Origin: Iphione sp. A-MEVVRFRX5
Taxonomy: Eukaryota
Length of the DNA: 64,000 nucleotides
Assembly: GCA_976226885.1 (NCBI GenBank)
Contig: OZ320319.1
Span: 66,278,001 to 66,342,000 of the forward strand
Reading direction: 5' to 3'
Position 1 is the first letter of the stretch. Each line of letters starts with the position of its first letter. Below, in pieces: positions 266-32,500 of this stretch. The notes under the pieces are model-generated. The model was given only the letters and a program-made list of their open reading frames with translations, was not told the origin of the DNA and did not search any database. A program made the position numbers and the translations under genes.

Positions 266-3200
266 TAAGGTATACCATTTCCGTTGTGCGACTATGCCCA
301 AAGATGTATTACATATTTATTTAAAATCTTTATTTTAGGCTTCAATAAAATAGAAATACAGATTGACAAGAAAACGAAAATACTATTCCATATATAAAAT
401 TGGTCATGATGGGATTGCTTTGACCAATTAGAACCTGAGAATCCCAGTGCTTTTTCTAAAAACCTGATTGTCGGGTTTGAGCTCTTCTTCGCAAAACTGT
501 TGTCTTGGCTAGTTTGGAATTTTAGATAATATACTTACATATATCAAGGTTCCGTTTTAGTATTTCTATGCAGTGAAACATATGAATAGCAGAGGGTCTC
601 TTCCATCGATTGTTCCAGTACATGTGTAGTGGGTGCTTACTTAAGTTATGAATGTGCGTCGTATCATGCAGGTACCCAAAGCAAACATGACTATGTATAG
701 AAAAATACTACTTAATTGAACAGATCATTAAAAGAAAAAACACTGTTAGATCTCATTTTTTAAACTGAATGCTCTGGCTATCAGTTAGAGGTAGGGTGGG
801 GGTTACTGTTATGACTAGCCTATTACACAGACACAGTGATAGTATATAAGTTAGTCGCATCCTCGACAAACACCCACACTGACTGCATCAAAAGGTTTCA
901 GGAAATCGTCGCAGACCTTCCATAAAAGTATCTCGAATGTTTATTTTTTCCCTGATTACTACTTAGCATGATTAGTGACTCCAAAACCGTCTCAGTGCAA
1001 ACACTCATTCTGGGTAAAATGGAAAAAGGTATAGATTGGGTAAGATATTAGTCCTTATGCTCTCTTTAAAAAGAAGGAAATAACTGTTCACTTTAAACTA
1101 TCACCCATTTTTTCTATGTACTTGAGTACCTTCAGGGAGATGATATAAATGTCAAGCTCGCGTCTCACAAAACATTTACCCTGTAGCCACAGCAGGCCGC
1201 CTACACCTTCAGACAGTACTTTTATAACTTCAAATAATGAGAGGCACTGAATGTTCTGTGTAGAAAACCTAGGAGATGACTACCTTCGGGAAGACAGGTT
1301 TTGAGGCGGCAGTATATGCTCGACGTGTACCTCACAGGACTCAGCAGATCACGAGAGAGTCTTTTTCTGTAGTAACGAGCAGCAGGAGAAGGGCATCTTA
1401 AGAGGTCTAAGCAACACTATCTATCTCTCGACAGCCCAAACACCAACCGCCGGCTAGGGCCAGTGAGAGGAGAGGAAAAAAAGTGCTGCATCTGCAGATT
1501 GGAGTAGAGTTTGGCAGTGACGCAGTGCACGGTTGTTGCTCTGCACCTCAGGCAAAACAGAACTACTCCTTACCCACTCGCGGCCGCTGGGATGTTTCGG
1601 TATTTTTTATTAGGCGTTTGCTATTGAGGAGTCAGGAATCAAATATTCCTGAGGTAAATGATACAGAAGCTTTATATTTCACATGGAAATGCCATTAAGG
1701 CATCCCCAGTGTAAGAACAGTCTACAAGGTTATTTTTCCTAACACCATATCATGTACACATAATTATAGCCTGCAGTATATGTGGTCATATGTGGTCTAC
1801 CTAATATCTTGATTTAATATCCAGTAATTACATCAGCATGTATTATCAACACAAGCATGGGAGCTAAAACGCCCACCATATTAACTGTTCTTTTGAGAGC
1901 ACTTTAACAAAAATCAACTTTTGTGTTCTAATGTGAAGTAGTAGAGAACACACTAACACGACAGGGTGAAGTAAGGTTAAAGTAGGTTTTTTTAATTTGT
2001 CTAATAACCGATTTTATGTTTGAAGTCTAACGCTCAATAGATATAGACGTTCTCATGTTGATATTGTGTGCCTAAAAAGCAACGGCATAGAGATTTCCAT
2101 GGTATTGAATTAATCATATGCATGTAGATCTATGCAGATTGTTCTCTTTAGGTTCTGGTAATCATGTTAAATTTATCCTTGTCCTCGGATAAAATACTTT
2201 CACAGAAAATTTCGAAGGAATCAGTATATTTTCATTTCGTCGAAGGAATATAAAGAGTAATAGCCCTGATCAGTAGAAATAGTGCGGAAATCTAAGAGGA
2301 AAGAATTTGTTTGTGGCAGTTGCATTGCAATTTTCATATACGCTCACTTCACTGGCTAGATCCATTACATTTTCAAAATCATCTTATCATGTAGTTAGAT
2401 GTTTTACTATCTTAGCTGAGATAAGTATTATATCTACGATGACTACATTTTTCATTCTCTATAGGGAGGTTTAAATTTGCCTGGAATTGTCGGACTTGCA
2501 TTACTCGAAACGAAATTGAAAATGTCAGTTGCGGAGTAATCACTTTGAATTAGCATATTTCCTGGTTGATGGGTCTACGGAAAAAGCTCACACGGCCTGC
2601 TAGGTGCTCATCTAAACACTAGTTAAAAGTGAAAGCTGTGGACATGACACCATTATACCATTACCGTTATCACCTGACTCACTCCGTGGCGTTATGAATG
2701 CAATTTCTGCTCTAGTATCTTTTTCTTCATACAATGGCGATAAGGTTTTTGATACTGAAATTTTTGCCAATGTCTCCCGGTTTTTCTAATTTTGTGTACG
2801 TCGTTGTTTCGTCGTTTTCTGCAAGACTGCTGTTTAAGTACAAATTTCTTTTCTTCTTATATATTGAAAGCACGATAGAGTACATAGTTATACAATACTT
2901 TACATCTCTAGTGACTGATCTAAAAGGTACGTTGATACATACATATTTTTGAAGTAGGAAAGAAGGAAATGTGGGCACTTGGAATGCTGGCAATTGATTT
3001 TAAAGTTGTTCCAGTGCGTTTTTACATTTGACTAATTTTATGGTTGTATTATTTCTTTTGTTTCACAAGAAAGACTATTTTTGTAGACGTTCCCTATATT
3101 TTTTATGCATCAATTGTTGAAAATCTGAAGTATGTAATTTAGGAGTTCGGGTGTAATATAAACGTCCTTTTCATTTTAGGTTTGTTTTTATGTTAAGAAA

Positions 3201-3853
3201 ATGAAGATGTATCTCAACTGTAAGCATATTTTCCTTCCATCTATGCATTCCCAGATCTAATGCGATAGATGACGTCTTACATCAAAATCGAAAGCACATT
3301 GGTATACATGTATATGTATGATTGAAAGTTACATACCTCTGAGATTTACCTTATTTCATTTATAATATCTGAACGTGTCTCTAGAGGCAGATAAAGGTCA
3401 CGTATTGTGGTAAAGGAAAGAAAAGCATGCTGTATACATGTACATGCCATTTGGTATTTGTGTGAATGACCAAAGCACAGGTAAAACACAAGCAGTTACC
3501 TTGTACATAGGCCACTTTCATTCTGAACTTGAACATATAGACTTTCAAACTGATTCAGGAGTCCTAGTTGATTGATTTGTTAGGCATTTTAGGAACAGGT
3601 CAGTGTGGTAACTAGAGTGAAGAGGCACAGGTTCACTTCACACAGCTGCCCCTAGGAAGGGTAATGTCTACCTCCCGCTGTTCTGTTCAGTGTTGTTTAC
3701 TTATGCCAAAGGTTTATGTACATTTTATAACAACACTGACCAGCTTAGTAGAAGATAAACTTGGAAGCGACTAGGAACCTCAGAACACATGCAGAGAAGA
3801 TCCTTGCAAAGGTGGGGTGGACTTTAAATAGGACGTATAAAGTTTATCCTTAC

Positions 3854-5644
3854 CGAGAAGCTGAATCGGCCACCCTCGTTGATGATCCTGTTGCCCCTGA
3901 ACCAGGTGATCTCGGGTTGTGGCAAGCCAGACACAGAGCAGTTGAACTTGACGGTCTGTCCCACCATACACTGCTTGTTGCGGAGCTTGCTGGTGAAGTT
4001 CGGCACCGAGTCGAAGGTGCGACGTCGCGACGACACCGACGACCGGATGGATTCGATGTCCGACGGTAGCGACGCGGACGGTGACGTCGGGACGCCCGAC
4101 TGTGACGAGCGCTGGTAGAGGTCGTCGTATGCAGAACCTAGGTCGCGATAAATGGGCTGGGTGTAGGTAGGAGTGTACTGGGGATACTGCAGGGTCTCAG
4201 GGGGCGCGCGCACCTCATACCTCTCGGGGACTACATATCTCTGCTTCTCGCGCATATCGAACTCGGCTTCCACCTGGCGCCTGATATCATCCGGACCACC
4301 TCGTATAGTGTACTGGTCGCCCTCCTCTCTCAAGGTGGTAGTGGGGGCCCCCCTGGTAGAATACTCCACGTCGACCTCGGTATTCTTGTACCGACTAAGG
4401 ATGTGACCCACGTCAGTGCCCGGGGGGACGACTAACTTCTCCCGTACCTTAACCCCGTACACCTGAGCGTCGGGAGACTCCCCGATCTCCCTGAGCTGTT
4501 CCTCGTTCAACTGATAGAAACGGATTTGTTGGTAGATAGTTGTATCCTCGGGGAAGTAGCTGCGGTTACGCTTGACAAAGTCCTCCAGGGTGGACACGGA
4601 CTGCTCGAGCAGCTTGGTCTTCATCGCCACTTCGTTGATCTTCCTGCTGGCCTCTTTCCGGTCGCCATGGCCGTACTCGTTGACGGACGTGTAGGTGACC
4701 GCCCGCCGGCCCGACGGTAGCTCCATCACCTGAACTCTCTCTGGCTCGAACTTCTCGCCCGGACGGAAGACGAAGCTGCCGATGTCTCGCCCTGAACGCA
4801 GCCTGCTCTGCACCACGGCCGACTCGCCCTCGTAGGTCATCACCTCACCGCCCGAGCCGTAGCCGCCGCCCTTCGGTCTTACACCGAACGTCTGGGTCAC
4901 CACTCGCGGTGCTCTCCTCGGAGGCACGTCAATGTCGTCGGCATCGTCGAAGCTGGAGATGCTACTGGCACGCTTGCGTTGGGCGCTGGCGATGATGCCC
5001 TCAAAGTCGATGGACGCATCTCCGTGGACGCGCGACAGGCTGGCTGCTCGCGTCTTCCGGGACGGCGCCGCGCTGGCGCGGTAGTCATCCCTCGACGCTA
5101 ACTCGACGCTATAGGAGCGCAGATGACTACTAGCTCCACTTCCGGTGGCACTCTGCTGGGCGACGGAACTGCCGACACGCCTGAGTTGGCCCTCGACGTC
5201 GCTGCGCTCCCCGGCGCGCCGCCGCTGATCCGCCATCTTGAGCCGTTCCCGCCATGGCCGCACCTTAGAAGCCGACGAGCTGCTCAGGTCGGCATCGCGG
5301 TCCACTGAATAGGCGCGTTTGCTCGAGCGCGTCGACGACGCCAGGTACCGGTCGGCCTCGCGCCCCACATCTCTGTCCACGGAGGAACTCAGGCGTGACC
5401 GCGAACCACTACGGGTGCTGGTGGTTGAACTGCTGAAGCTTGAACTTAGCGTATCATAGCGCGACTGGCGGGCCGTGTCGCCGGAGTAGCGGCTCGATGG
5501 CGAGTCGAAGGATGACACGCGACTGAACTTTGATTGGTACGTGCGCCTACGGTCGGTCTGCCCGTATGATCTAGGCCAACCAGGTGTTTCTACTGAAGAT
5601 GCCATATTTGCGGTGAAGCCAGCCGGAAGGGAGTGGGAGAGCAA
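3854..5644 (-). CDS. Large exon (597 codons): Ser/Arg-rich region, uncharacterised segment, N-terminal half of an Ig
   Basis: TTTTTCTAG acceptor immediately before the ORF; GC-rich; ends PNFTSKLRNKQCMVGQTVKFNCSVSGLPQPEITWFRG..FSFS then GTAAGG donor (phase 0); internal strong-context ATG at 5605; alternative acceptor at 5592. Confidence 0.88.
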
Positions 5645-8579: not shown

Positions 8580-11500
8580 TCAGAGAGGGGGATGGCTGGC
8601 ACCTCTAGCAGTGTGACATATAAGGGCGCCATCACCATTGGGCCAACATCAGCCGTTCCTATGGCAACCCCACCCCGCCCCCGCCCGCAAGCCTAGTTCT
8701 AGAACACAGTATACCACCGAGAAGACCTACGGATTTTGCATCATTGAGAGAAGGGTTACTCACTCTAATGTTGGTAACAGATAATACCTTTTGATATACG
8801 TGTAAGTCGCAAGTCGGGGCAGACACGATAAATAACACCCTACAAAGGAACAGCTATACAGTGCTAGCACTGCCTGATGTATGCCGACAGCATATGTCTG
8901 AAGGAAGTTTTGGCACTGTACCTTTCAAAAATATTAATCTTCACTAAATGCCCGTAAGATTTGACTCATTATTGCATAGTTATCGTTACATTTCGCCTCA
9001 ATGTATTTTACATCGGTCGGCCAAATGTAATGGATAAAAACTCAATTTAATACATCTCTAATTCCTCTTTGGGGCTAATATATATAAATATTTCCTTGTT
9101 ACTATCAACCTGTTTACGTCACTCAAAAACGATGTTTATTACCGTAATATGGTCTCGCCCGTGAATTGAGCATGATGTCTACAAATGCAATAAATTCCAC
9201 TATACCTGTATTATACATCAATTCTGCAGCACTGCACGACACGTCTCCCTTTATATCAGTTCATTGGAGGGAAAAGAACAGGCCTACATGTATATCTTGA
9301 CCTTGACATGGAAAGCTGGAGCTGCTATGTTTGTACTCTGATCAAAGTGGCATTTTTCCTCAACCGGATCTTGTACATTTATTCTGCTAATCATTCATTC
9401 ATCGTATGGGTTACCCCCATTACCACCTTATAGCGATGGACCTAGATATTTCTCAGGGACATACGTGCCAATATATATCAATATATATGTATCAGTGGAA
9501 GTCGGATTAATTACTCCTTTCTTCGGAGAAATTATGTACACAATATATAGACTTGGAAGGCACTGCTGTGCAGGAAAACATGAGAAAGCCTTAATTTGTT
9601 TATGTTCGGGCAGGTAATTTTCAAGGCATCATTTATCATGATTCTTTTCCTACCGAAAACATTCTCAGCAGAAAGAGTTGCCTCTCATTGATGGTTGGGC
9701 TATATCTGTAGCTTTAGCAGGTCGGTACCTCAAAAGTGATATCCCGTGGGGTCAACCCGCGTGTCATTCGCTCATTTATCACTAGAGGCCAGCACCTGTT
9801 ATACCGAGTGCCGCCATGTTGTGGCAAGCCTTCAAATAACACTAGGTGGAGCCATGATACCAGGCACAAGGTGGAACAACTCAAGATGTCATTATTATAG
9901 ATGAGTATTGGCTTTTGCAACATTGAAAATAAAATATACTTAGCAACTTGGCCAATTATGTTTTTCTATTAGGGGGTCTTTCCGGTTGCATACATTTATT
10001 GCCACCAACCGAACTGCCCAAGTATTCTTGCTTTCTTGGGATTGAAAGTCTTTAATTACATAACCTATTCATATTTATTTCATTGTATTTACCCAAACAA
10101 CATTTCTTTTTTACTCAGCCTTTTCAAAGATATTCTTTGTTTTGACAAAATCAATGAACACTACATACTGTATTATCTTTCGAGAGCAGCTTTACCATTG
10201 TGACCTTGGTGAAAATAAAGCAAATAGATGCAAGTACATGTACATGTATACCTCTATCAACAAATCCCTGACAATGAAGCCTCTACATAATGAAGCTGGC
10301 TCAAATTATAGCTTTGTTACCTAAGGCCACTATTTTATAGATCTTTTTTTGAAAGAAAATGAATGAGATATAAAGACATCACTCTAAGTGCCACATAAAT
10401 AAGTCATAAATATTATGCTAAAAGCCTTAAAAATTACTGTTCAAACAGGTCTACCTCTCACACTGAAGTTTTCCATAATAAAGTGATTTTACAAAACCCA
10501 TCCACTTTGTTGACAGAAGAATACCTGTAAACTCATGTATACAGATACATACTAGAAACTCACTGAAGGTTTATGGATAACAAAATCTTTTAGCATAACG
10601 AAGTATGTATAACCTAACTTTGTTTTACCAATTTATGAAGAAGACTTCAGGGAAGGACCAAACCTGGCCAGTTACAAGGTTGTTTCTTAATTGAAGTTTT
10701 CTAGTATATGTATATTATATAGATCCATTTGTAAAGTTGAATCGGTGCACAATATTTTTATCAACAACCAAAGCACTTATGCCATGATCAACTCGTACCG
10801 TTCCAAACTTACCAAGACCTCAACTCACCTACTCTTGTACCACCTTGCACTCTTACCAGAACATATTCTTGGTCTTACACACACACCCTTATGACCTCGC
10901 TCAGGCCAAGATGGAAGAATCTTTCAGGCCAGCGGGACAGTGCAACTGAGTGGGGATTTGAACATAGCCTGTTTGGACAAAACCAATACCACATGGGTAC
11001 GTGGATAAGTGTGGCTGACGGGGTGTAAATTTAAAGTACCCCTACAACCTGCTTTTCTCTTTCTTCCTATCTGACCCCCTAGACTAATGTATCATGTATT
11101 GTATGACCTGATCTCGCATTTTAGGAGGATGTCTATTGTTGTTTTGGTGAATGACTTGTGTGTGATGAAATCTGGCCATGGTAGGGATTTGAACCTAGGT
11201 TCTCAACATCCCTTGTTCTCTCTGTATAGTCTATACAATGGCCGGCACTGCCATCCAATGTGCCACAGAGGCAGAACAAAGTTTAGGGCATAATTCTTTC
11301 ATTTATTGCAGGGTTTAAGATGAATCATTGTTAGAGGTTTGATATTGTTTTCAAATAATATGGGGGAGACCCCCCACACACCCTCCTTTCTTTCCCAAAT
11401 TTTCTAAAATTAAAATGCATCTTAAGCATGATCTCTGGAAATATTTGTGACTTTTCATGAATTCAACACATCTTTAGCTAAACCTGCAGTAAAATATTTC

Positions 11501-14500
11501 ATTTTGCATTGATTAAATTCATCTTTAGTGCTGCCTCTGCAAATATTTGTCACAAATGCATCTTTGGCATAGCCTCCAGAAATGTTCCATTTTCCCTTCA
11601 TTAATGTGGGGGGAGGCCTCAACACACACCCCTTTCTCTTCTTTTTCATTTTTTTTTCAAGTTTTCCTCACATTATGATTCTTTTTACACCTACATTCAT
11701 AATGTTTTCATTGAGTCCCTAACCATGTTTATTTCGTGGCTTGGTACTTCCTCGTGGGACACCCTTGATTGACTCAACAATCGCCCCTAAAGTGGATTCT
11801 GGCTGAAGAGGGGTGGTGGTTGTTGGAGAGACAATCTCACCCTTTCTCCCACCTGTAGGCAAACATAATCAACAATATGATGGCTCTCCTTTACATGGTC
11901 CCCTCAGCTTCGCCTCGTCGACTGTAACTATGATATTTCACTTATAAGCCGGGTCCTTATGCCGGCTCCTTAAGCCGGGTCCTTCCTAAGCCTCTGAGTC
12001 CGGGGAGGCTCTGTCCGTCCTCCCCGGACTCCACACTCTTTACTGGGTCGGCGCATCATACAGTTGAGATGGGGGATACTTTAAATCAGATAAAGTCTTC
12101 GTACCTTCGATTCCTGTTTATAAACACCTCAGCTGTTGCCTTCGTCTTTATAACCAGTAATCCCCAGTCCTCGTACCTTATCTACCATGCATAAAGTTGA
12201 CCAACATCACTTTGCCATGAATAATATTTGGATTATATAGAATGTAAACAAAGAATGCAAATGTCTAGTTTTTGCATCGAATGCAGAGTTAGATGTAACT
12301 GTGGTGTATTTATGTATGTCAGTTTGATGTTTTTATAGTGTAACTTGAGACAGAGGCCAACAGTCCGCCTGTCCAGGACATTTCCCAGGCCAGGAATGTT
12401 GCCCCTTCAAAGTTATTGTTCCCTGCAGAATAGTAGGTGATCTGTATTAGTACATGATGCTTGGAATGTGCATGAAGTACATGTAGTTGCATGGTTTTGG
12501 TACCGATTGCAGGGATGTGGCTTAGGTTAGTGAGCAGGAGATAGTGGGGAGCTGAGTGGGCAACGTCCCGGACTGAGTGAGCAGATTGCGACTCACCAAC
12601 TCCCCCCCCCCCCACCCAACTGGATTCGCAGCTTCGCTGCAGCCGTTAGTGAGGGAGGGAGTGAGTTGACGCATGACGTTATGAGCTGGTGAGAGTAAAA
12701 GTTGTTTGCCAAGGTAACAAGTTTGTAACGGTAGGAGTGGATAAACCACGAAATAATCTGCTCCTTTCATGTACGAACGTATGAGCTTTATTATTTCAAT
12801 ATATTGCCTGAGATATTTTAGTTCCTCGAAATACTTCTATACATAAAGATTAATCTTCTATGTGCATTGATAAAAACGCATTTAGTCTTGATACAACTTC
12901 AGTTGAATACATACATCTTTTCGATACAAATCCTGAAGATGAAAAATGATAATATCTTCAGTATTACTCCTTGATCATTCACAAACTTATGGACATAATA
13001 CAAAAAGAACTTTATTGTCATGTCATAACATTCCATCTTTAAATTGAACACAAATTCACGACTTGTACGATACATTAAAAATATTGCAGTGCATGGACGA
13101 TGGGGGTGAACATGATTTATTTACACGCATTGTATGCAATAGACTGTTCATAGTATGCCCTATCATAGATTTATTGATTGAAGCATCTATTCCTCAAGCC
13201 TAATATGCATCCATCCCTAAAATTAACCTTGTGAGTAGGGAGTTTATTTTCATGTCAAAGGGGAATATTATCCTAAACATGCATGTACTTAGCAAGCAAA
13301 ATGAATAGATATCTTTTAAAGTAGGATATGATATGAGAGGATATATATCATTTCTATTTAGTTACTATTAACTGGGATAGTGTTTGTGATATTAAGCACA
13401 GACAAATTAGTAACATATATATAGACATAGACACAAATATATAATTTTATATCGATATTGATGTCTTGGTATCTAAGTACTACTCATCCTCCCTTTAGGG
13501 AGTTCCCCGAGTTTCCACATTTACACGCAGCGATAAATCAACATGTACTTCTTTTTACTATGGAATAATGTTAAATGAGTCTCACCTTCAACGACCAGTT
13601 TGGCCTCAGTGAAAGCCGTCCCCGCATCGTTCATGGCCCGGCAGGTGAAGACGCCAGCGTCTTCCAGGAAGGATTGGCCAATCACAAGGGTGCACGTTTT
13701 GTCCTCATCGTAGAAGGTTTCGTAGCGCGTACTGCTAGCGATTTCTCGTCTGTTCTTGAACCTGTCAGTATTCAAATGATGAAGCAGATATATCAGTTAA
13801 CTTCAAATTTATTAACTGCACAAACAAAAAACGGTATATATGGACGTCTTGAGAGCGGTGTTTCATAATTTGAGAATGACTATCGCCGTGCACAATGAGA
13901 CGTGTTTCGCTCATTGTACATTTAATAAATGAGAAATTGATTAATAATAGTTTCATCAAAATTTAAAACGCAACCATCTGACTCTACCCTTTGCATATAA
14001 TTACCAAGAGATAGAAACACTACAATGCAATGTCTTCTCGACATTTACAGATGGAAAGTATATGTACAACATGTACTCGTTGCTTCCTATGCTCTCTATT
14101 ATAATAAAACCAAATACACGTATACATGACAGGGCGGGACCTTCGTAGATGTCATTTATGAATCAAGGAAAAAAGTCGAAGGCTTACCATGATATATCTG
14201 GTTTAGGTACACCCTCGACCTTGCAGACAAATGTAGCTGGATTGCCTTCAATGACCACTGTCTTCATCAAACTACGTGCGAAGAGTGGGGACACGAGGGA
14301 GGGAGGCACCTTATCTGTGTAATAAAGGTGAAGAAATAGTCGTACATTCGTCTTCCACCTTAAGTTTCCTTTGTATGAAAGAAAATAATTGTATTGATTT
14401 CGCCTGAAGTAGCAGAATGGTAAGAATACAAAACTCGTACCTATGACGACGAGCGAGCACGAGCACAGGCTCTGGCCGTAGGGGTTAACGGCCAAGGCCT

Positions 14501-17500
14501 TCCATTGGCCGGCGTCGGCGGGGTCGATGTCCCGCAGCTCTAGCTTGTAGACCCCGCCGCGATGAGAGGATATCCGGCGCCGACTGTCCGTGGTGAAGAT
14601 CCTTTTCTGACTGTGGTACCAGGATACCTCCGGTTCCGGCCGACCGGCCACTGTCGTGGGAAAATGGTACAAGGTCGTGAAGCAGGCCTATAGTTGCTTA
14701 GGTAAACATACACATCATGGCAAGTCAAGCAAATGTTTTCCCTACACCTTGGTTGCAGATAGAGCCCTCTCAGCCGTTAAGTGCAGCGCGTCGATACTTA
14801 TAGCTAAGGAGAGGGTAAAATGGCAGTTGTAAAATAGCTAGGAACAGTGTTCAGGGGGACGGGGGCAAACGTAGGAGACCCTTTAAAACGTTCACACAAC
14901 AGCATAGCACCAAAAGAAATTGATCGTGATGCGAAGCTCATTTCTCGGGTATTTCTCGAGAAATACCCATAACTGGTGTGTGCCGAAATGAAGGCAACGT
15001 GCGGGGTCTCATGTTCCGCAGAAAGAAAACTACAGCCCATTGTAAAAGGTCAAATAGTAAAATACATGTATAACCATTAGGATTGTTTGACGTCAATCGT
15101 TATGTATCAATATCAGTAAACATTATTATTTTACACTTACCCTTGACGGTGAAGACGACCTTGTGTCCGGTCTGCACAGAAAGGTCCATGAGGGGAAGTA
15201 CGAACTGAGGAGGCACGTTCTGCAGGCTGGCGTCCGAACCGCGTCTCTCGGCGTAACTCATGTAGTAACCAGCGTCCGAGCTGCGTCTCTCTGAGCTCGT
15301 GAAGAACCCGGCGTCCGAACTATGGCGCTCATACGTAAGACTGTATGGCAAACACATCAGTAAAGCCATTATTGGATTTGAAAGATACCTTACCGAACTA
15401 CATATTTCAAAAATGGCCTATTAAAATGCACATGTATACTGTGGCCACTATGTGGCTAGAGACTGGCAGGCCGCGTGCTCCGTGCTGCGTGAGGAGTGTG
15501 GATCGGGCGTGAGGAGTGCAGATCATGTAGGGAAGTGCAGTACTCTGCACGGTGGTACTGGGGGATCGGCACGCAGCACGGGCGTGCGGATCATGTGCGT
15601 ACGAAGTGCAGCTAGGCCTGGGGAGGCTCTAGGGGTATATATTGGGAGGGAACCCTTGTTCTGCGTTCACTTCTGGCTTAACTGTTCTACTGTTCACTTC
15701 AGCAATAAAGCTCTTTGTTGCATTTTGGCGTCATGTCTTTCCTCCGGAGCGGTAAAAGCCACAATACCTTGCTAAAAGTAGGCACAAAGCTTTTTAATAT
15801 TCCTCTGAGAGGTACATACATTGTACATGTATATCTTGAAGCAAGGAAATATGAATATATTGTCACTAAATGTAATGCTGTCAATCTTAGAAATACTAAT
15901 TCAAAGTAAGATTTTCCTTCTTTTCAAGCTACATTTTATAATGCTAGACGACTCTTTTAAATGCAATAGGCTATTCTGTCTGCATTGTGCTATGACCTCA
16001 ACGGATTGATAGTTGCAATCCCATAACGCACTTTATAATGTAACCGTTAGAATATAATAAAAAAAGCAGTCCTGCGAAATATATCTTTGCCCCTCGTAGA
16101 CATGTTGCAATACAGTTTAGCGCCCTGCCTCCTTACAAACGTAGCCGTATGAGGTCTGATAGGGGTATAGTATATAATCACCATAGTGCTCAGTTATATG
16201 ACTAAATATACTCCCAATAGACGAGGGACTATCAAAGATGGCACTTTTCAATACATATTTATCAAAATTAATCTGTTTCAATTCTTATATGCAGCGAAAA
16301 GACGGCTTATCGTTACTATTTTGTAGATTTGGTTCGTTAGAAGTAATTTCATATACATGTATAACAAAATAGTTAAAGACCTATTCTAAATAGTGATACC
16401 TTGAGGCAATATTCGCCCATATAGGATCAGTGTAACCACAGAATGGCCACGATAAGAATATCTTAGCATTTTCCTTTCCATTGGAAAATATAAGATTTAT
16501 GGATATAAAATCTATATATAAGATTTTATTTAAGCTCTTACCTTACACCACTGAGGCTCTGTGTGTCACTAAAGACATCCGTACTGAAGAGACCAGTGTC
16601 TGAACTACGTCGTTCAACGCTCAGGATGTCTGCGTCGGAGCTGCGCCTTTCTGAATAGCTACTGCGGTCAAAGCTCGTGCTGCACGAGGAAACACAATAT
16701 ATACAGTAGGTTAGGGTAGAGTACTCATGCCAGCCCTGAATGATCATGCCCTGGAGACATCAAACGTTTCTTACAGGAACCATGAACCTTTTTACTTATT
16801 TGTAAATCATTCGGTGGGTTTATTCTGGGCTTTCCGATAAAGCTGATCGGGGGCTCTGTAATGTAATCATTGCAAGCAGTCAAAGATACATGTAGACCTG
16901 TATTCCCTCTTTATTCTAGTAGTATGCCGTGTAATCTTTGTCCTGATGAGGAACGCAAAGCTATAAGTACTGTCTAGTGACATTCGGTACGCAGTTGAAA
17001 ACAAAGCCGAACTGTAAACATACCTTCTTCGATGACCTGCATCGAGAGATCTTCTTCTCCAGTTGGCCTCTGAAAAGATTAATGCTAATTGTCCCAGTGG
17101 CTGCAGTAACCGTAACATTGCCAATGATAAATATTGAGAATAATGAATACTCATATCATAATGAAATACTACCGCTTCCCATATCTCCTCTAAGAGACTG
17201 AAGACGGCGATCATGCTGTGATATATAGTAATTATTGACACTTTGTGTTTACTGTACACAGACAGATACCCTTGCAATTGAATTATATTTTAGGGCCGAA
17301 CATTACAGAGAAAGGATGCTAATCAGGACATTCTTGATTCTTTTCCAAGCTGTTCCTAATTGAGAAGTGTCCCATTTTGATTATTCTTTATAAAATTATA
17401 TACAGTATATATAATTTTCATTTCATTGTATCCTTAACCAGGAATATATTCACCTATCATCAGGACAGGGCTCTTCCATATCTTCCTGAGGTAGCATAAT

Positions 17501-20500
17501 ACCATCTATTATTGAGAATTACGAGACCAGAATACCCAGGGTTCCCCCTTACTCTTATTTTGAATAGCCATCTGGGGTCTTTTTATGCATAGGGGACAGA
17601 ATCCTATAGACCCACGACCTTTTTATGAGTTGTAGACCACTCTGGGTTGGGGCTACAGTACATCTGTCTGGTCATGATCAAGAGTCCCAAGCCGGCGATT
17701 GAACCTGCTACCTCTCAATCAGTGGACCAGTGTGCTACCACTGAGCTAACTCCCCATCCAAACTGCTCTTTGCCTAAGTATCCCTATCAGAGGCATATGT
17801 CCCCAATGGAGGCATGCCCTATAGAGGCTTTCTCTTGTATCTCCAACTGAAGAGAGTGCATTCCCCCATCTTCTAAATCCTGGTTTATTAGCTTAGTTAA
17901 ACATATGTTTAGGATGATTAAAGCTAGTCTTCTAGTTTTCTTATGAATGCCATTCCTTCACTTTTCATCATTCAAATATAAGTTTAAAACTGCTCAAGGA
18001 TGTGCATTTTTCAACTTCTTTTTCTTTCCGTGCCGTTCGTAGCCTACAGGCAATTGGTACATCACTGGCAGACTACAAAGCAAATAATTACATAGAGGCC
18101 GCACTGATCAAAGCAGGCCTGTAGCCAAGGGGGTATCAGGGGTATCGTCCGATATCCACCATAGACATTTCTGACTATAGGCCTTGATAGGAATAAACAA
18201 AATTAATTTGTTCCACCTCTCAGGTATTGGGGGTCCGATACCCCCCCCCCCAGTAAACTTCCTGGCTACCGACCTGCAAAGGGCCAAATTATCTTTTATA
18301 ATAATGATAATATAATGTAGATCACAATAAGACATTGTCACCTTGTGGACAGGTACAGCTAAGTCTCCAGGCCTGTCCGCAATGTAACGTTTTACTGAAC
18401 TTATAAGTAAAGATCAAACTTTTTAAAAATAGAAAATATCACTAAATAATAACGCCGCCTATTGATAGGAAGGATAGCTGCAGATCTGCCTGACTCTCTT
18501 CGAATGTCAGTCACCTGTCACGTGGAGGTCACCGATGGTGGTGCACTGGCCGGAGGCGTTGGTGGCCACGCAAGTGTAGCAGCCTGCGTCATCGGGAGTG
18601 ACCTCATTGACGTTCAGCATGGCCATGCCTCGCTTGTACCAAAAGTCGTATTTGGCGCTGCCCTCCAGCAGCCTTCGATCCTCGTGGTACCTGAAAGATG
18701 CGAGAATCAGATTAATTTGGGTCCTTATGTAATGTGCAAGAAGCAAAGATTGAAAAAATGTTTTCGATACATCAAATGCCTCACAAAGGTTTTCAGTGGA
18801 CAACCAAAATAGCGTATGATTGTGTATACATGTACATCTATATGAGTGTCTCTTTATGCTGCTGTTTGTGTTACTATTGTTGGTGATTCATGACGAGGTC
18901 ATGAACGTTGTTGAGAAGCAATCCTTTAAATCCACAGGCAAGACCTGTTTAAGATCCGAGTAGTGTGTACCTACTAATACGTCCACTCTTTTCTGTACCA
19001 TGTTTCAACTTTCAAAAATATACCTTAGAAGAGTTTAAGTTAGACTAATTGGACGTAATATGCAAGCTGCTTTTGGTATTAGTTTTGGTTACGTCTCGCT
19101 CAGGTCTACTGAAATGATCACCGAAGTGTGTCATTTTGAGACAGAATGATGTTGTTTACACCTGCGGTAAATACGTCATTTTCACCACTAGTCCACAGGA
19201 AAAATGTACATGACCATAGAATCTTTTATAATGGTCTTAGAGATTCATGCACTCATTTTCTTCCATAGGGCATTACCTTTCACGTAAACTTCGTTGTTTC
19301 AAAATCCGACCGTTATCCAGGAAGTTATTGCTGTTTGTAATTTCGCTCTGGTTTGCACTGATAAGCAGAATGTCAACACTACCCTAGATTGACCAATGAC
19401 TGTCGTAGCCTTGCTACCAGTTTCACCGATTGTTTGGTGTCATTCTGCATCAGTATGATGTATTTTGATGATAGGTATATTGGAAGCTTAGGTCAAATTG
19501 AAAACCTTATTGTATAATAAGACATTAGGACTTAATAAACTCACTCAAACCTAGCTCAGCCGTTTATAGATGTTATTGGAGGAAATCAGAGTTCAAAAGA
19601 AATTGAACTGTCTTTTCTATATCTTGTATACTTCTTTGTTTTGTATACTCTAACAATATTTCATGCTACTTACCATGTGATGGTAGGCTCGGGATAGCCT
19701 TGGAATTTGCACTTGAAACGACCAGTGGAGCTTTCATATGACTCAATATTGCTCAGCTCAATGAGCACTTGAGGCGCGACTTCCGGCAATTCTACAAAAA
19801 AAATCAGATGCATTTAGAATGGTGTGTATGTGTGCATGCCTATGTATTCGAATGGAGTTACAAGCTCTCACGAACAAAGGGAATCCTCTAAATATACATA
19901 TCTGAGAGCATTTCTCATAAATTACAAGAGCTGTATAATTTATCCCTACAGAAATCAATGCCTGAAGAGAAAAAAGTCGAAACTGTGTTGAAAACAGTGA
20001 CAAGCAGAACATAAATACCGCCGTTTATATAATTTATACACATAGGAACAAACTACCCCAGTGACACCTAGCAGATGTGAGACCTGAAATTCATTCTCCA
20101 TGACAACCAGGTAGACGCTAGATCCCATTGGCCGTAACAATCAGTCAAGACATTGATTCCCTTCGGTACTCATTTCCACCGCCGAAGGGAACTAGCGTCT
20201 ACCATGACAACCAACCATGGGAACATATAAATACAGGCAACAAAGTTGGATAGTCACAACTCGGTAGCACTCTATGAGGATGAAACACTGCCCACATCAA
20301 CACGATTAAAAATAAAGTGTGTGTATATAGTCCTTTGCATCCCATCTATACTCAAGAGGCAGGATAGAAACAAAGCGGTAGGAATGATAACTGATTCAAA
20401 CTATATGGTAAAAATAGAGTAATTGGGCTAAAAATCATTACACTGAAGGACTCATTCCCCAGCATAGGTCTAATGTTCCACTGCTACACTGTGTAAATGA

Positions 20501-23500
20501 TTTTGTGTGTGTGTGTGTGTGTGTGTGTTTCGGTACGTACGATTTGTAAAACTATACTAAGGAAGAGAGCCGTAAATAGTTCTTGATATTTTCTACCTGA
20601 TCAGGTAGCATCAATTATGTATTGGAACAGGACGTAACCTTGAAGAAGAGAATGTGGAGCCTTCATGGATGTAAAGCAATTTTGCTGGGAGGTTGATAAC
20701 ACGTTTTGGTAGAGATCAATATATTTTCAATATGTCTATCTCGTTTCTGAAATAAACCTGACAAGAATAAATCCATGTGAATTACATAGACGGAGAAACA
20801 TAATGTGTGCATTTGAAAATTGTAAATCTTTTGGTTCATGACTTCCCCAATACCAAAAGCCATGATAGATAGATGTGTGGACATAGTGAAGAGCTCCACG
20901 GAGCTCCTAGAGTACTTCCCACGGGGGCAGAGATTCAGTTACAGTGACAGAGGACCCTTGTAACAAACACTTTAGAAAAAGAAGGCTTCTCTCTACCATC
21001 CCTGCATAAATTGGTTTCTAGAACGTACCCATCTGGATCTCCCGCTCAATGGCATTGTCGGGCATTCTCAGCTGGAGGGCAGCACTGTGCTGCGCCAGGT
21101 GACCAATGCCAAGGACGTCGCGGCGCGCCGCCTCGCGCCACTTCTGCGACTGAAGCCTGGTGCGATGGTGCATCGTTCGCAGCTTCTTACGCTTCAGCCC
21201 AGCCTCGGCTTCCCCCTGAACGGTGCGACAACAGTTGATGAAGATAACATCATGGACTGCGTGTTACAGCGCTATATGCGGTGAATGAATCCGTGTCAAG
21301 TCATCGCTTGTGTACCAGTAACTACGATCGTGGATACTAATCGGATCAACTGGCCGAGGGCTCTGTTTTAGTAACTGTTTATAATAGATAACATTATAGC
21401 ACCCTTTTGTTGTAACGATATGTCAAAATACATGCCCACTGTAAGTTGGTCCGAAAATTGTATATTTTACCTTTAAAATACAAAATAATAGCAAGGACAC
21501 GAGAGGAAAGATTACTCACATTCAGCCAAGGATGACACATCGCATCTCCGATGGTCATGCGCTTCCTGCAAATGAAAACGCATTTCATTCAGCAAAAAAG
21601 AGGGGGGAAAATCCACTTTTGTGGGCTGTATTCGCTTCAAGAAATCGAGTTCCTAATATATACATACCTAAAGCGAGATGCTATAAAGCGCACTATAAAG
21701 AAATACGAGATGGAATTTCTAAGACATTCACCGACGTGAGATTGACCCCTGCCCCTGTCTAAAACTAAGTAGAATTTAATAAAGATTTTAGTATCAGAAT
21801 TTGTAAAGCCATATCATAGAAAGAACAGCATCGCTCGAACCTCTTGTCTCTGACGAGCAACTTTGAAATCCAGTCTTTGGCCTGGGGTGATATTTCCTTC
21901 CAGACTTCGTCCCGGAAGTCAACGTTTGCCGCCAGGATGTTCGCCATCGTGTCCCGATTGGTGGATCCCAGGAAGGCAGAGAGACCGCTGAGACTGAAAG
22001 TGACGGAGCATACGCTCTTTATTATACAGCGGAATGCCACCTAATTAGGGGCACATTATCTTTTAGGGAAAAGCCTCTAAATAGGACACTCTGGGAAAGA
22101 ATAGATTATATCTATTAAAAGTAGTCTTTGATAGGGATACGTCGGAATTCGGGACAGTTTATGAAACAACCAGGGGTATCCTGATTAGAAACTTTCCACT
22201 GTTCTAGGATATAAGTGAGCACCACGCGTGAATAATCTTTCCTTAATGTATATCGTTTTGGGGTAAACGGTAGAGCTATAATCGCGTCAAGGTGTTCCAC
22301 TAGCTGGAACTGAATGTGAATTGCATTTCAAAATAGATAATTATCCCATGTATATAGCTACCAAGATTAACAATTTAATTATGGCTTTTGACAAACTTAA
22401 CACCTTATTGAATCAAACCACAAAACATATCCACAGGCCTGTAGCCAGGAGGTTTTGTGTAGGGAGAGGCGGGGGTGGGGTTATCAGGCGATATCCCAAA
22501 TACCTCGGGGGTGGGAGAACTCTTGGTGACCATCTCTATTCAAGTCTGTATGTAGGAATCTTTGTGTGTGTGTGGGGGGGGGGAGTATCGGACGATACCC
22601 CTCATACCCCCTGTGGCTGCGGGTCTGTATCCACATGTTTTTGTATTACAGCGTTTAAACGAGTGAAAACGACAATATAAGAGCATGATGCTTCTGTGAA
22701 GGTGGTAAAGCGAATGGGAGGTCATCTTTCAATGCACAATCCCCGAACCTCATCATATTCCTCTTAACAATAACCGCCTATTATCCACTGAAGCTTGAGT
22801 GTATACGTATGCACAAAACCTGTGAGCTACCCACATGGAATAAGCGAAGCAGCCTAGGCTCCACATATCAGCCGACGTTCCCACCGTGTCGTATGAGAGC
22901 AGCTCGGGCGCACAGTACTCGGCCGTGCCGAAGAGCACCTTAGTCGAGCCGTCCGGGTCGAGGCGACGTGCCAAGCCAAAGTCGATCAGTTTGACGTCCT
23001 TGGACTGACCCGTCACACACACGACATTCTCAGGCTAAAAGACGAAGAGAGCCGGGCTATGTAATGATATTAGTTACATGATATACGTACATGTAGTGAC
23101 ACATTCTCCATTCTTACCATGAAGAATGTGGGTTCTTATTTTGCCATATGTAGTAGAAGTGCGTGAACTGTCCGATTTTCCGGTATTAACAGGACATTTT
23201 ACTAAAATAAGACAACTAGCTGTAACTTGTCACTTTTTATCACAACATCTGGACAGCCTTTGGGATAGTAAGACTTCATACTGAAAAATAGGTCGCGTGT
23301 AAATGCTACTTAAGGCCAGGATTACTTTCGTATTAGGCCTAATAAAAATATCTGTGTTTCTGGTCACCCGAGCAACACTTATTTGAGTACCAGTAGGACA
23401 TTTTATTTTTTTCTTGATTTGTAAATATCTCAGGATTGAATAGCGAAAGAGACTTTTGCTATTCACCATTACCTTTCTTATGGTTTTATGCTTTCATTTG

Positions 23501-26500
23501 ATACATGATTCATTAAAATGTGAGTAGTAGACGTGATATTGTCATATACATGTTTCCCTTTTAGTGAAAATTAACATATAAAAAATTAAAAATAAAAAGT
23601 ACAACCTACCGACGGACCCTGTATTTTTTCAGCTTATCACTAGAAACACTAGAACTTTTGTAGGCCTTAGTGATGTGCCCCGGATAGGGTATACTACTTA
23701 AGGACAGGATGACTTTCGTATCAGTGATGTGACAGCAGTTGGGATTAACCTACCTTGAGATCCAAGTGAATGATGTTGTGCTTGTGCATGTGCGCCACAC
23801 CCTGACAGACCTGCCGCATGTAGTGGATGCACTCATCCTCAGTGAGGTCATGATCAGCCTCCGCCAAACGCTCATACAGATCACCACCCGAAAGACTGAG
23901 AACACAAGTACAGACCAAAAGATTCACTACATAATGACACATGAAACAAATACTTGCCTGATGATGAAATACACACATAGGGACGTGCATACACATACAT
24001 ACTTATCTTGAAAATAATTTGTGAGGTTAAATATGAGTTATTTTCCTTTTTTCCTTCTTTTTTCACTGTGAATATGGAATTGCATTTAATGGATAAAATA
24101 AGGGAACTCCAGTACGTAAAGTCTGGCTCTGTGAAAAAAAACACCGCAAAAAACAAATGTTTGTACTGGAATCTCATTTATTTGGCTAATACACAATGCA
24201 TTACCCTTCTTTAGTAAATAAATCACGAGAGACACTCACAATTCTAATATCATGATGATCTCCCCAGGAGCTTGGAAGGCCTCATGGAGGGAGAGGAGTT
24301 TCTTGTGGTGGAGATCATTCATCACTTCCATCTCTCGCCGCACGTACTCGCGCTCCACGGGCTGACAACGGATGAACTTAGCCGCCCAGTTCACGCCGGT
24401 GGCTTTCTCGATGGCACGATGAACTACGCCGTACTTACCCCTACACACAACAAAAACCAATACCTGATATAGGTACAGGTATACGTGTTTTAACTTCTGT
24501 GAATGAAGTAGATGTATTCTGTGAAATCACGTCATTGTGGGAAAATTTGCAATCAGAGACTCACTGTTTCAACAACACTTTTCAAGGCTTTTTAGCTTCA
24601 TGTTGATTATTACATAATTTATGTGTTTTTTGAGTAATACGTCTGTATTTCTTCACTTCTTTTTTCATTTTCTTTTTAAAAGGGTCTAGAAAATAGTGGT
24701 CTTAGGCCACAATATCATAGGTTGCGCTAATTTTGTCATAAAGAGGTTTCATTGTCAGAGGATGTGTTAATAGGAGTGTACCTGTATGTGAAAGCAAAGT
24801 GAAATAGTGTTTTTTGCAAGTAGTTAAGTGAATTGCAAAATAATATCTTTCTTTTTTCTGAGAGATTTCTTTTAAATACAAAATTTAAAACATATTATTA
24901 GTCAGCAAAAACTGACACTGCTGTTCTCTTCGATGGAAGATAAAGTTGGTGACGCAAGGGTATGTGCTGGAAACCCTGCCTGGACTAATTTCCTTCCTCA
25001 TTAAACGTATATGCAAGATTAATTCAGACGAGTGCATAACCGCTCTACTCTTGATGTTTTTGTATTCAACTTCTTCCCGTCAGAGTTTAGTACGTATACA
25101 ATGTTTTCTACATACATATATTTATTACCACCTGAAAAGGAATAAATAGCTCACCTGCCGATCTCTTCACAGATGATGTATTTGGAATACACATCTCGCT
25201 TGAGATTATCGACATTGACCTTAGTGTATTGGAAGTCGGTCGTAACTGGAAACAACCAGGACATTGTTATAGGTACACTGCACCAAAACGGACGATAGAC
25301 CATCTCGTTTAATTTTTGTTTGAGAAACGAAGGGAAAACGTACGGATTTGTGATATAATATACCTGGACATACATTACTTCCATGTACCATGAACTTATT
25401 CGGCATCTCGAAATATCACTCTAGACTACGCCTCATGCATAATGAAATCATTTGCTTCCACCATGTTTCCATCCCCTGTATTATTAAAAAAAGATGTAAA
25501 ATTCATCAAGGTTTTTGATTGAAGCAGATGAAAATACAATTAGTGATTCTCAACGTGCTAAAGAATAGCGGGTGAATCAATAGACTACAGAATTTGATTG
25601 TATTTGCTCAGTCATAAAATTTGTATGTGGATTTGAGTGCTGACTACCAAATCTACAGATCAGCTCAACTAAACTTGGCTTTACATTACATTACTTGAGG
25701 ATGCATCTGCAAAAAGAAAGTAAGTTTCCTCTTGCTCAACAAATACCATAAGGCAAACTACACGGTACACGTCCATTCACGCATAGAAACATATAGATGA
25801 AGTATCATTTAAAATATGACAAATGGCAGACCGGGTCCTGGGCATACTAAAACTTCTTGATCAGTATTACCATTATTATTTTGGGGGCCAGGCGGAGATT
25901 ATTGATCTTGATGTTTCCACCTGGGTTGGATACGTTGACAGTTCCAAAATACAGGATTGGAAAAAAAACTAAACATCGTTTTAGTTTTCCCGACAGTAAA
26001 TGCGATTAAGCCATCAAACCATCAGAATCCACAGAACAACGTCTGTGTTATTAACTGACCGAGCTTGTCGTAGTCAATCTCGATCTTGGGCTCCTGGATC
26101 AGGATGTAGTCTGTCTCCTCGCTAGGGTCGCTGGTGCCGTAGATGTTCTCGGCGAGCACCCTGAACTTGTACTGCGTATTATCAGTCAGACGGTGGATCT
26201 TAGCGTGAGTGACGTGACTGGTGCCGCACTTCAGCCACACCTGGTGGGAAATCAATCATTTATGTATAGGCACGGCTGCTCGTTCACTACTTTACCTACT
26301 GAATGTACACGTGCCTGCTTTAAAGCTATCTCCTCAAGTGGAAGTCTTATCAGGTAGAGTACGCTTTTCTCTAATTCTGACTTTTTTCTAGACAATATAA
26401 TTGTTATCATTTATCACTAGTTACACTCTAGAATTACATGCAGGCTGCAAATCAATATTAGATGAAAAAAAACATCATTATCAGTAAGCCACAAACTCTA

Positions 26501-29500: not shown

Positions 29501-32500
29501 ATATTTAGTTTCAGTATCTTACCCTATAGTTATTTGATAATGAACGGTCGTAATTTTAAAAGGCCTTATAATGACCATAACCATATATGCTGCCGGTGGG
29601 TACAGTGTTAATGTATGTATATACGGGCGAGCCACAAACTAAATGCATATGTACATGTATATCAAAATAATATATTGCCTGTAGAATGTTATGTTAGGTA
29701 GGGTGGATAGTGACATACACGTTTAGGATGAAATCATATTCAGTTAAGGTATTGCCCCTAACCATAGTTCGAATTTTACTGTATATCCTCTGCTTTCTTA
29801 CAACGCACTCCCGTTCCCCTAAATGGGAGCGAATTATACGCAGGGTCGCCCTTACGGGACTAATGGGTGGACGTTCATTTAACCTTACCAACGAACATCC
29901 GGCGTCGGTTTGCCCTTGACCTTGACTTGGAAGTGAGCATTTTCACCCTCACGTACACAGCGATCCTGCATGTCTTCAATGAATTTAGGCAGCTCTTGAT
30001 CTGTAAGACGCACACATATTTCCGGTTATTGCCTACGTTTCCACGGAAATATCGCTCAATTCATTTTTATATCCTTTTAGAGGGCTGGCAATCTATCAAC
30101 GAATGGCAGCTGACCAACATATTTGAAGCCTCCCATCCGTTTACCTGCCTCACCTATGTAAGCNNNNNNNNNNNNNNNNNNNNNNNNNNNNNNNNNNNNN
30201 NNNNNNNNNNNNNNNNNNNNNNNNNNNNNNNNNNNNNNNNNNNNNNNNNNNNNNNNNNNNNNNNNNNNNNNNNNNNNNNNNNNNNNNNNNNNNNNAACAG
30301 ACAGACAACCAGAGAAGTACACAAGCAGATGATTTAAGTTAGGAAAACGAGAGAGAAAAAGAGGGATTATCAATCAAAATATGTCTGTAAACAGACTAGG
30401 GGTCACGTAGGGTGTGTTGTGTGTATGTATGAAAGAGAGCGACAGACAGACAGAGACAGAGACAGAGAGAGAGAGCTCGAGACATGCATGTACATGTACA
30501 TACAAGCACACATATGGGAGGCCTTTTTCAGGGTGATCACCTGCAACATCACGTCCCTGTTAGCGACAATCAGATGGGCACTTCAAACCTAGCAGCCCTG
30601 GTATTGGAGATGACCCTTAGATACAGTTCTTTCTATGGACTTCGTCCCTCATAATTGCATTAATTTTGGTAATTATAAATTATTGAGGCGTAAAAAACCG
30701 CAACCCTCGTATCTCCCGATAATATGTATGATAGGGGTACATTCAGTGGACAGCAACTCAATGAGACGGTGCGCGCTCCTGGTATTTCAGACAGAATCTA
30801 TAAAATGCAGCAATTTAACCGCGGACTCTCTGGATTGTAGGATGAATATCCAAGACTAACCAGACGAAGCCTGGGCGGTGACAGAGTCGGACATTTCGGA
30901 CGGCTCCGACATACCGACCGCGTTCTGGGCGCACACACGGAACTCATACTGGTTGCCGTGCAGCGCGTGTCGCATGGTGTAGGGCGGCGCGTCGACCGTT
31001 CGCTTCTGGACGCGCACCCAGCGCGGGCCGCGCACCTCGCGCTGCTCGACGATGTATTGCAGGACAGGACTTCCGCCGTCTGACACGGGTGGCTCCCACC
31101 TGATGGTCACCTGGTCGTCGGTGACCTCGGTCACATACGGCCGCCCAGGCATTGAAGGGATATCTGGAGACGGGAGGGGGGAGAGGCATACGTATGGCTT
31201 AAATTTTATACATTTATAAATTCTATTAGACAAGAATTCCCTTTGCAAGGACACACTGGAAGATTGATGAGTATTATATTGTCATAATTATTTTCACTTG
31301 ATGAGTAATATATCTAATTCTGGACTTCGGGAGGAATATATGTACATATACAAGCTTGACAGGTACTCTTTCTTCACAGGATTTTACCCTATTTATTGAA
31401 GTATACATTACATGTACCTGCAACCCTACGAGAACTATACGCACGTACAAGAGAATTAACGCGCCAGATTGATGAGGATTGGGTGGAGTCGGCTCCCAGT
31501 CAGTGAGACAAATTCTATGGATTTCCCTCCAGTGTCTCCAGGCACAACTATTGATCTTTTAGACTTACCTTACAACCATCTTTAACCAAACCAATCAACA
31601 AAGGATATCGAAACAGATTAATAAGTGAAGTTGCAAACAGCATGCAAAAACGTAGTAACAAAGCAACACACCATTATATGGATTATCTGTTTCCCAAAAG
31701 TTTAGATTGCTATAAACTTCGCGTATCTTGAGCGGACTGTACCAAATGTCGCTCCCTTTGCTGATGAAGGTCCATGCCAACTGTGGGAGTGACTATATTG
31801 TGTATGTAGAAAAGGCACCTGACTTCCACTAAGGCACATGTTTATTACGGGCTAGTGGTGACTTGCTCATGATTACCAAAATGTTCAAAGCGAGCGAAAC
31901 AATTTAGAAGATCAAATTTCGTATTACTTCATAATGACATATCATGGTCTAGTTATGTATTATAAGAAAACCTATACATATTCTATAACATGTTTTCACA
32001 GATACCTCATAGACCAAAGGTCTCATCTCTGAACTAATTTATGACCTGACTTCTTAAAGTATATTGAAATGCAGAACTACATTCTCCAAGTATCCTCTTC
32101 AAAATAGACCCATCACAAACTCAAGTGCCCCAGGGAATGTTCGCTGCAATATGCAAAACACAATGTCTCCTACACGAAGAGGGTTTGATATCAACTAAGG
32201 CCATCTACATGGAATTGAAGAACTCTCTTGTTACAATCAGCGTGGGAGCATCATCCTTAAAATAGGTAAATCACTACCTATTATCTCATTACCTTCAGCT
32301 AGAGAAGTTTGATATACTTCTTCATCATTATATAACCTCAACTTTCTACTATCCAAGGAATTTGCCCACTTCCTGCTTATCTTGGTAACAATCTTATAAC
32401 CTAGCCTCCTTCACCTGTAGAAACGCACACCGCTCTTCAGAAGACCTCTACTCCAGTGTGAGAGCTCCCATGAGGGAGTAAGCCTGAAAGAGGTTGATGT

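Follow-up and report, generated by a model that had tools for sequence, protein, structure and literature searches.

Repeated R-R-x-S/T motifs in the linker between the first two post-kinase Ig domains of a titin-like giant muscle protein gene from Iphione sp.

We analyzed a 64-kb window of the genome of Iphione sp. A-MEVVRFRX5 (contig OZ320319.1, 66,278,001 to 66,342,000; all coordinates below are positions in this window), which carries on its minus strand a gene of the titin/twitchin family of giant muscle kinases. Between Ig1 and Ig2, the first two Ig domains behind the kinase, lies a linker with six R-R-x-S/T motifs and one variant within 104 residues. With somewhat more confidence than doubt, we read this linker as a multisite phosphorylation switch, probably disordered, of a titin-like giant muscle protein. 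The exons that build the linker, the history of its repeated units and the competing explanations are described in turn.

Linker exons and the motif array

Exon borders were predicted from the sequence by an AG acceptor behind a pyrimidine tract, a GT donor and matching phases. Exon A (17024..17069, minus strand, 46 nt, phase 1 to 2) encodes W-R-R-R-S-L-D-A-G (unit 17058-17035) and the first half of a junction site, H-R-R-S. It is defined by its splice sites, its phase and homologous exons in two related loci, L001 and L007. Exon B (16542..16679, minus strand, 138 nt, phase 2 to 2) holds the units E-R-R-S-S-D-A-D (16651-16628) and E-R-R-S-S-D-T-G (16615-16592), and is supported by its splice sites, its phase, the repeat family D1 and the alignment of its start with the second linker exon of L007. 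Exon C (15141..15340, minus strand, 200 nt, phase 2 to 1) was placed by splice sites and phase. The splice model, a codon comparison of the units, a pattern scan and a repeat finder support its linker part (15205..15340), which encodes E-R-H-S-S-D-A-G (15330-15307), E-R-R-S-S-D-A-G (15291-15268) and E-R-R-G-S-D-A-S (15249-15226). The remainder of exon C (15141..15204) is the start of Ig2, P-P-Q-F-V-L-P-L-M-D, and continues in frame with the I-set match in the following exon; this start is conserved as P-P-[QC]-F-T-L-P-L in L001 and L007. The next Ig exon (14650-14441) begins in phase 1, fitting the end of exon C.

When the Ig1 exons, exons A, B and C and the second exon of Ig2 are spliced, they form a single open frame. 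Between the end of Ig1 and the P-P-Q-F with which Ig2 starts, the linker is 104 residues long, and Pfam detects I-set domains on both flanks. The preliminary description of this stretch had proposed that three exons within 15141-17069 join in frame into a linker of about 100 residues between the first two post-kinase Ig domains, and both proposals hold. Pfam found no domain in exon B, nor in exon C taken whole, and an ESM Atlas search recognized only the Ig half of exon C. A protein search with the Ig2 exon returned no scoring candidate. Plus-strand open reading frames (ORFs) over the linker exons were rejected as antisense translations, as they were without domain matches.

The six R-R-x-S/T motifs are RRRS, RRST (across the A/B junction), RRSS in three copies and RRGS; E-R-H-S-S is the extra variant site. 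All the motifs that the preliminary description had listed were thus recovered. When the residues of the linker were shuffled, R-R-x-S/T occurred 0.61 times on average, and none of 100,000 shuffles reached six. The pattern R-[RHK]-[SGR]-[SL]-D-[ATVM]-[GDS], searched in all six frames of the 64-kb window, gave six matches, every one of them within exons A to C and in the coding frame. At the DNA level, a repeat finder identified a five-copy family of 20 nt at the unit positions, with copies 70-100% identical and 36-42 nt apart within exons. The motif array exceeds chance, and the observation is confirmed.

At 138 nt and phase 2 to 2, exon B is symmetric, and the frame would survive if it were skipped. 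From the sequence, skipping would leave an R-R-S-L junction site and a linker of 58 residues.

L001 and L007 have no counterpart of the intron between exons B and C (15341-16541); there, a single exon holds the corresponding coding sequence. The intron contains a GC-rich part at about 15450-15640, an 18-nt direct repeat (15487-15504 and 15507-15524) and a plus-strand ORF of 107 codons, and it may have been gained or represent an inserted element.

Related loci and the origin of the repeated units

Two related loci extend through the linker. L001 is an 11-kb contig (ENA ERZ26858995) reached via the kinase-exon fragment P0007 (63% identical), and it spans the same gene from Fn3 and the kinase through the third Ig. 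L007 (JAAUYG010113522.1), found by scanning metagenome contigs with an Ig1 exon alignment, provides 3.9 kb downstream. Both could be spliced in phase, with open frames and AG/GT borders, and both follow the same plan as the gene studied here: an Ig1 exon of 176 or 179 nt is followed by a short exon of phase 1-2 and then by a single exon running into Ig2. The homologue of exon A measures 49 nt in L001 and 55 nt in L007, with the same phases. L007 has a single second linker exon, and its start can be aligned with the beginning of exon B here, S-F-D-R-S-S-Y-S-E-R-R-S-S-D. The comparison therefore supports the exon model and, with it, the coding status of exon B.

Besides the exon plan, the three loci share their Ig flanks and the first site of the linker. 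The second exon of Ig1 is 65% identical to that of L007 and 57% identical to that of L001. The linker starts with E-L-G-W-R-R-K-S-x-D-x-G in L001 and L007 and with E-A-N-W-R-R-R-S-L-D-A-G here. The core W-R-R-[K/R]-S-x-D-x-G is unchanged across three species, with linkers that are otherwise strongly different; judged by this alignment, the first site is old and conserved. L007 continues with G-R-R-R-S at the exon junction, followed by S-F-E-R-D-S-M-S-L-E-R-R-R-S-L-S, and L001 has only D-R-D-R-S there. Neither locus has a separate exon B or a series of the E-R-R-S-S-D-A-G type, and their linker introns contain no further R-R-x-S reading frame. L001 thus has one R-R-x-S/T site in 60 residues, L007 three in 76 and the present linker six in 104, so the site count is highest here.

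The other relatives stop short of the linker. A protein search with the Ig1 exon found one close relative, P0185 (88% identity), and its 3-kb contig, L003, ends 74 nt past the Ig1 exon. Contigs obtained with kinase fragments (L002, L004, L005 and L006) either do not reach the linker or come from genes that are more distant. On L002 (117-kb ENA contig, 9900-14140) lies a related gene for a giant kinase, whose kinase exon is 60% identical. This gene has the same type of tail, W...[LV]-x-I-G-[RH]-L, and a first Ig, and the locus ends with no Ig2; the gene may be a paralogue or a distant orthologue. Two metagenome contigs, L008 (JAAUYG010134105.1, 7095-7406) and L009 (JAAUXT010081195.1, 9980-10534), hold more distant homologues, in which an extra intron splits the second Ig1 exon after N-V-N-E-V-x-x-D-D-[AG]-G; neither contig reaches a linker exon.

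The repeated units themselves were then compared. The five units of the E-R-R-S-S-D-A-G type share 6-7 of 8 residues, and two hydrophobic or aromatic residues follow each unit (IL, LF, FF, YY, then L). In most pairs of units, 4-5 of the identical residues differ in codon, including switches between AGY and TCN serine codons and between AGR and CGN arginine codons. The DNA of the units is mostly 70-75% alike, apart from the two 3'-most units, which are 90% identical over 20 nt. Identical residues written with different codons suggest that most copies are old and that the peptide rather than the DNA has been kept, which indicates selection on the peptide. The 90% identity of the two 3'-most units points to at least one fairly recent duplication. 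As the unit resembles the old site (R-R-S-[SL]-D-A-G), the series was probably made by copying it, that is, by amplification of the W-R-R-[K/R]-S-x-D-x-G site.

These results also bear on the possibility that the array is a low-complexity spacer, grown by slippage or unequal crossing-over, which only determines how far apart or how flexibly joined Ig1 and Ig2 are and whose R-R-x-S motifs are not regulated. Linker length and sequence vary widely across species (60, 76 and 104 residues), and the recent duplication of the two 3'-most units is what such growth would produce. A nematode relative (P0064) has an unrelated linker between its first two post-kinase Ig domains, 30 residues rich in Lys, Glu and Ala and without R-R-x-S, which suggests that a linker at this place is a family trait and the motif is not. 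However, drift would not preserve identical residues whose codons differ between most units, and the core site is unchanged across three diverged species. The units keep Arg-Arg, Ser, Asp and the hydrophobic pair, which goes beyond a simple bias in composition. We therefore consider an unregulated spacer unlikely.

Proposed function, acting kinase and relation to known systems

In a phosphorylation switch, three kinds of site could act: the old W-R-R-[K/R]-S-x-D-x-G, the R-R-S at the A/B junction, and the five copies of the E-R-R-S-S-D-A-G type. The 104 residues of the linker include 31 Ser and Thr, 15 Arg, no Lys and 16 Asp and Glu, so the unphosphorylated chain would be almost neutral. We infer that a kinase of the PKA, PKG or CaMK type reads the basic residues and phosphorylates the linker serines. 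As each phosphate adds about two negative charges, full phosphorylation would turn this balanced chain strongly acidic in a stepwise manner. The acidic linker might then either expand or free a partner, for example actin or myosin, held by Arg and aromatic patches. Site D2 of Mytilus twitchin and the M region of cMyBP-C, described below, are precedents for control of this type.

PKA prefers a hydrophobic residue at +1 and disfavors Asp at this position. The preliminary description had called the sites PKA-type, and the R-R-x-S/T consensus does occur six times, but a hydrophobic +1 residue is present only at R-R-R-S-L, the sole textbook PKA site in the linker. Asp occupies +1 in four full units (three E-R-R-S-S-D and one E-R-R-G-S-D) and in the E-R-H-S-S-D variant, and at the junction site a Ser follows the Thr at +1. 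On these sequence features, PKA is one of several candidate kinases for the linker serines.

The scarcity of textbook PKA sites and the Asp residues at +1 weigh against a phosphorylation switch, and so do several other observations. The reading frame of exon C had no match in a collection of 5.8 billion proteins. L007 has a Pro after the conserved serine. The single R-R-x-S/T site of L001 implies that many sites are not needed in every species, and the linker of the nematode relative lacks the motif altogether.

Phospho-motif arrays in inter-Ig linkers of muscle proteins are already known from the cMyBP-C M region and the KSP motifs of titin. The M region of cMyBP-C lies between Ig domains C1 and C2. 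It comprises about 100 residues with three PKA serines, Ser273, Ser282 and Ser302; phosphorylation of Ser302 depends on that of Ser282, which is also a CaMKII target, and the full contractile response requires all three (PMC3351594). Like the present protein, cMyBP-C is a sarcomeric Ig/Fn3 protein, and among cases of such graded multisite control it is the one studied best. In contrast, a kinase domain is absent, the sites do not repeat one common unit, and no sequence relation was detected, Pfam finding nothing in the linker exons. In the M-band part of vertebrate titin, the linker between M5 and M6 carries a KSP motif array, which is multiply phosphorylated (PMC6922384). The M1-M10 region of titin resembles the present protein in having post-kinase Ig domains with linkers of irregular length. 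However, its KSP array sits between M5 and M6 and not between M1 and M2, is proline-directed by sequence, whereas the motifs here are Arg-Arg-directed, and has been tied to differentiation and the binding of Bin1 rather than to the acute regulation of contraction.

Long I-set/Fn3 arrays, together with Fn3, a CaMK-like kinase, a regulatory tail and Ig in this order, are features of the giant titin/twitchin family, to which the gene belongs. The repeating module of twitchin and projectin is Fn3-Fn3-Ig. Upstream of the kinase, the gene has the domain order Ig-Ig-Fn3-Fn3-Fn3, repeated at least three times (53300-63700, minus strand), and the twitchin module was not found in this array. In PDB matches, three kinase exons scored 60, 59 and 30 bits against Aplysia twitchin, 45, 68 and 43 bits against human MLCK4, and 46, 56 and 35 bits against titin; the N-lobe exon was best against Aplysia twitchin (60 bits), and the two other exons scored higher against MLCK4. 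The regulatory-tail exon had no PDB match to twitchin or titin at E up to 1. The second exon of Ig1 matches titin M1 (29.6 bits to 2bk8), with twitchin absent among the 60 matches listed. When the 67-residue kinase exon was searched against 1.84 billion representatives, the best match was 63% identical and no close orthologue appeared. The named kinase-exon matches that were checked are mostly MLCK-like, obscurin-like or 'titin homolog', and mollusc twitchin is absent among the named proteins of the best 150 kinase matches. By these comparisons, the gene looks titin-like and is not demonstrably twitchin.

In twitchin of the bivalve Mytilus galloprovincialis, the site D2 (Ser-4316) lies behind the kinase in the Ig21-Ig22 linker and is phosphorylated by PKA, and phosphorylation of twitchin weakens its binding to actin and thin filaments and ends catch (PMC12040844). 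Given D2 at residue 4316 of 4736 and a total of 24 Ig domains, Ig21 would be the first Ig after the kinase, as here. Mytilus twitchin is likewise a giant Ig/Fn3 protein with its kinase near the C-terminus and a site in a post-kinase inter-Ig linker. It differs in its domain repeat and in that D2 is described as a single site, whereas the present linker has six or seven; the kinase studied here is no closer to twitchin than to MLCK. The preliminary description held that this animal has expanded the D2 switch. In its full form, this would make the gene the twitchin of this animal and the linker the homologue of D2, with a single PKA site for catch release multiplied into a graded or ultrasensitive catch switch. 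The position shared with D2, the PKA-type consensus, the N-lobe score against Aplysia twitchin and the greater number of sites than in L001 and L007 agree with this proposal, and the last of these stands as a finding. Twitchin identity and homology to D2 were, however, not demonstrated by the domain order or by the searches with the kinase, tail and Ig1 exons, and catch is documented for bivalve muscles, not for this animal (PMC12040844). A multiplied D2 site is thus distinctly unlikely; because the domain order points away from twitchin and the kinase is about as close to MLCK4 as to Aplysia twitchin, the tie to D2 rests on position and motif type and not on shown homology.

A bolder form of the phosphorylation switch, which we regard as quite improbable, would make the linker of a titin-like thick-filament protein a phosphate rheostat of six to seven steps that arose behind a stretch-sensitive kinase by amplification of an ancestral W-R-R-K-S-x-D-x-G and acts as a graded, catch-like tether, convergent with D2. 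Each unit, with its Arg-Arg, Ser-Ser, Asp and aromatic pair, would serve as a short motif for binding actin or myosin, and the units would be turned off singly, perhaps by the kinase of the protein itself. A graded tether between filaments would thereby be set by force or second messengers.

We give very little credence to the idea that the serines are substrates not of PKA but of CaMKII or of the protein's own CaMK-group kinase, the array recording kinase activation in cis, for example by stretch: the kinase, about 250 residues upstream, belongs to the CaMK-like titin/twitchin/MLCK group and has intact HLDLKPEN, DFG and APE motifs, Arg stands at -3 and a hydrophobic residue (I, L, F, Y, L) at +4 relative to the second serine of each unit, Asp stands at +2 in the old site, and these features fit a CaMK-type preference better than a PKA-type one, but the assignment of kinases from motifs is unreliable. 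Stretch raises the phosphorylation of twitchin in skinned Mytilus fibres, according to a review (PMC7589332).

If the serines are used, the linker would be a natural case of a single regulatory site multiplied into an array in a giant muscle protein, with intermediate states surviving in relatives (one, three and six sites). The three natural linkers would make it testable how site number relates to a graded or switch-like response. Phosphorylation control behind the kinase would also extend past bivalve twitchin and vertebrate titin to a little-studied titin-like worm protein. If the serines are not used, this would be an ordinary variable linker.

Domain layout and further observations in the window

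The gene is very large and, followed on the minus strand from 64 kb downward, encodes numerous Fn3 and I-set Ig domains; ten successive coding pieces from 63.7 to 54.7 kb gave Pfam matches to I-set and fn3. An Fn3 domain at about 27.4-26.0 kb lies ahead of the kinase exons, which are within about 25.2-21.8 kb and are followed by the regulatory-tail exon at about 21.2-21.0 kb. Pfam, PDB matches and tblastn together place the kinase domain and tail exons within 21021..25220 (minus strand, approximate outer limits). Pkinase matches were obtained by Pfam on the exons at 23751-23915 and 22756-23034, and tblastn with MLCK-like proteins delimited four kinase exons (24442-24239, 23894-23754, 23034-22840 and 21992-21843). 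The regulatory-tail exon (~21263-21021, minus strand) is conserved in L003, a compact locus in which Ig1 stands directly behind it.

Ig1, the first Ig after the kinase, is encoded by two minus-strand exons. The first (19674..19791) covers I-set profile positions 1-34, has AG/GT borders and is conserved in L001 and L003; the second (18515..18690) covers positions 36-90, ends in phase 1 and is 88% identical to L003. Behind the linker, Pfam detects further Ig exons at 14650-14441, 14300-14187 and 13796-13566. The first of these is the second exon of Ig2 (14441..14650, minus strand), which covers I-set profile positions 19-81, fits the splice model and has a homologue in L007 at 2956-3159. Rfam gave no match in the 13-20 kb part of the window.

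Three further features of the gene were noted. The intron between the second Ig2 exon (ending at 14441) and the first Ig3 exon is without stops and in frame with both, so that 14187-14687 (minus strand) forms one open stretch of 167 codons. Its retention would add about 45 residues in frame, and the open stretch may be due to chance. A run of 132 N (30164-30295) lies inside an intron-like stretch of the gene. Further downstream, an open exon of 606 codons (3827-5644, minus strand) is rich in Ser, Arg and Asp and ends in the first half of an I-set Ig. It contains three [RK]-[RK]-x-[ST] sites (D-R-R-R-T-Y, R-K-R-A-S-S and S-R-R-R-T-F), and the whole C-terminal region looks rich in basic-directed kinase sites.

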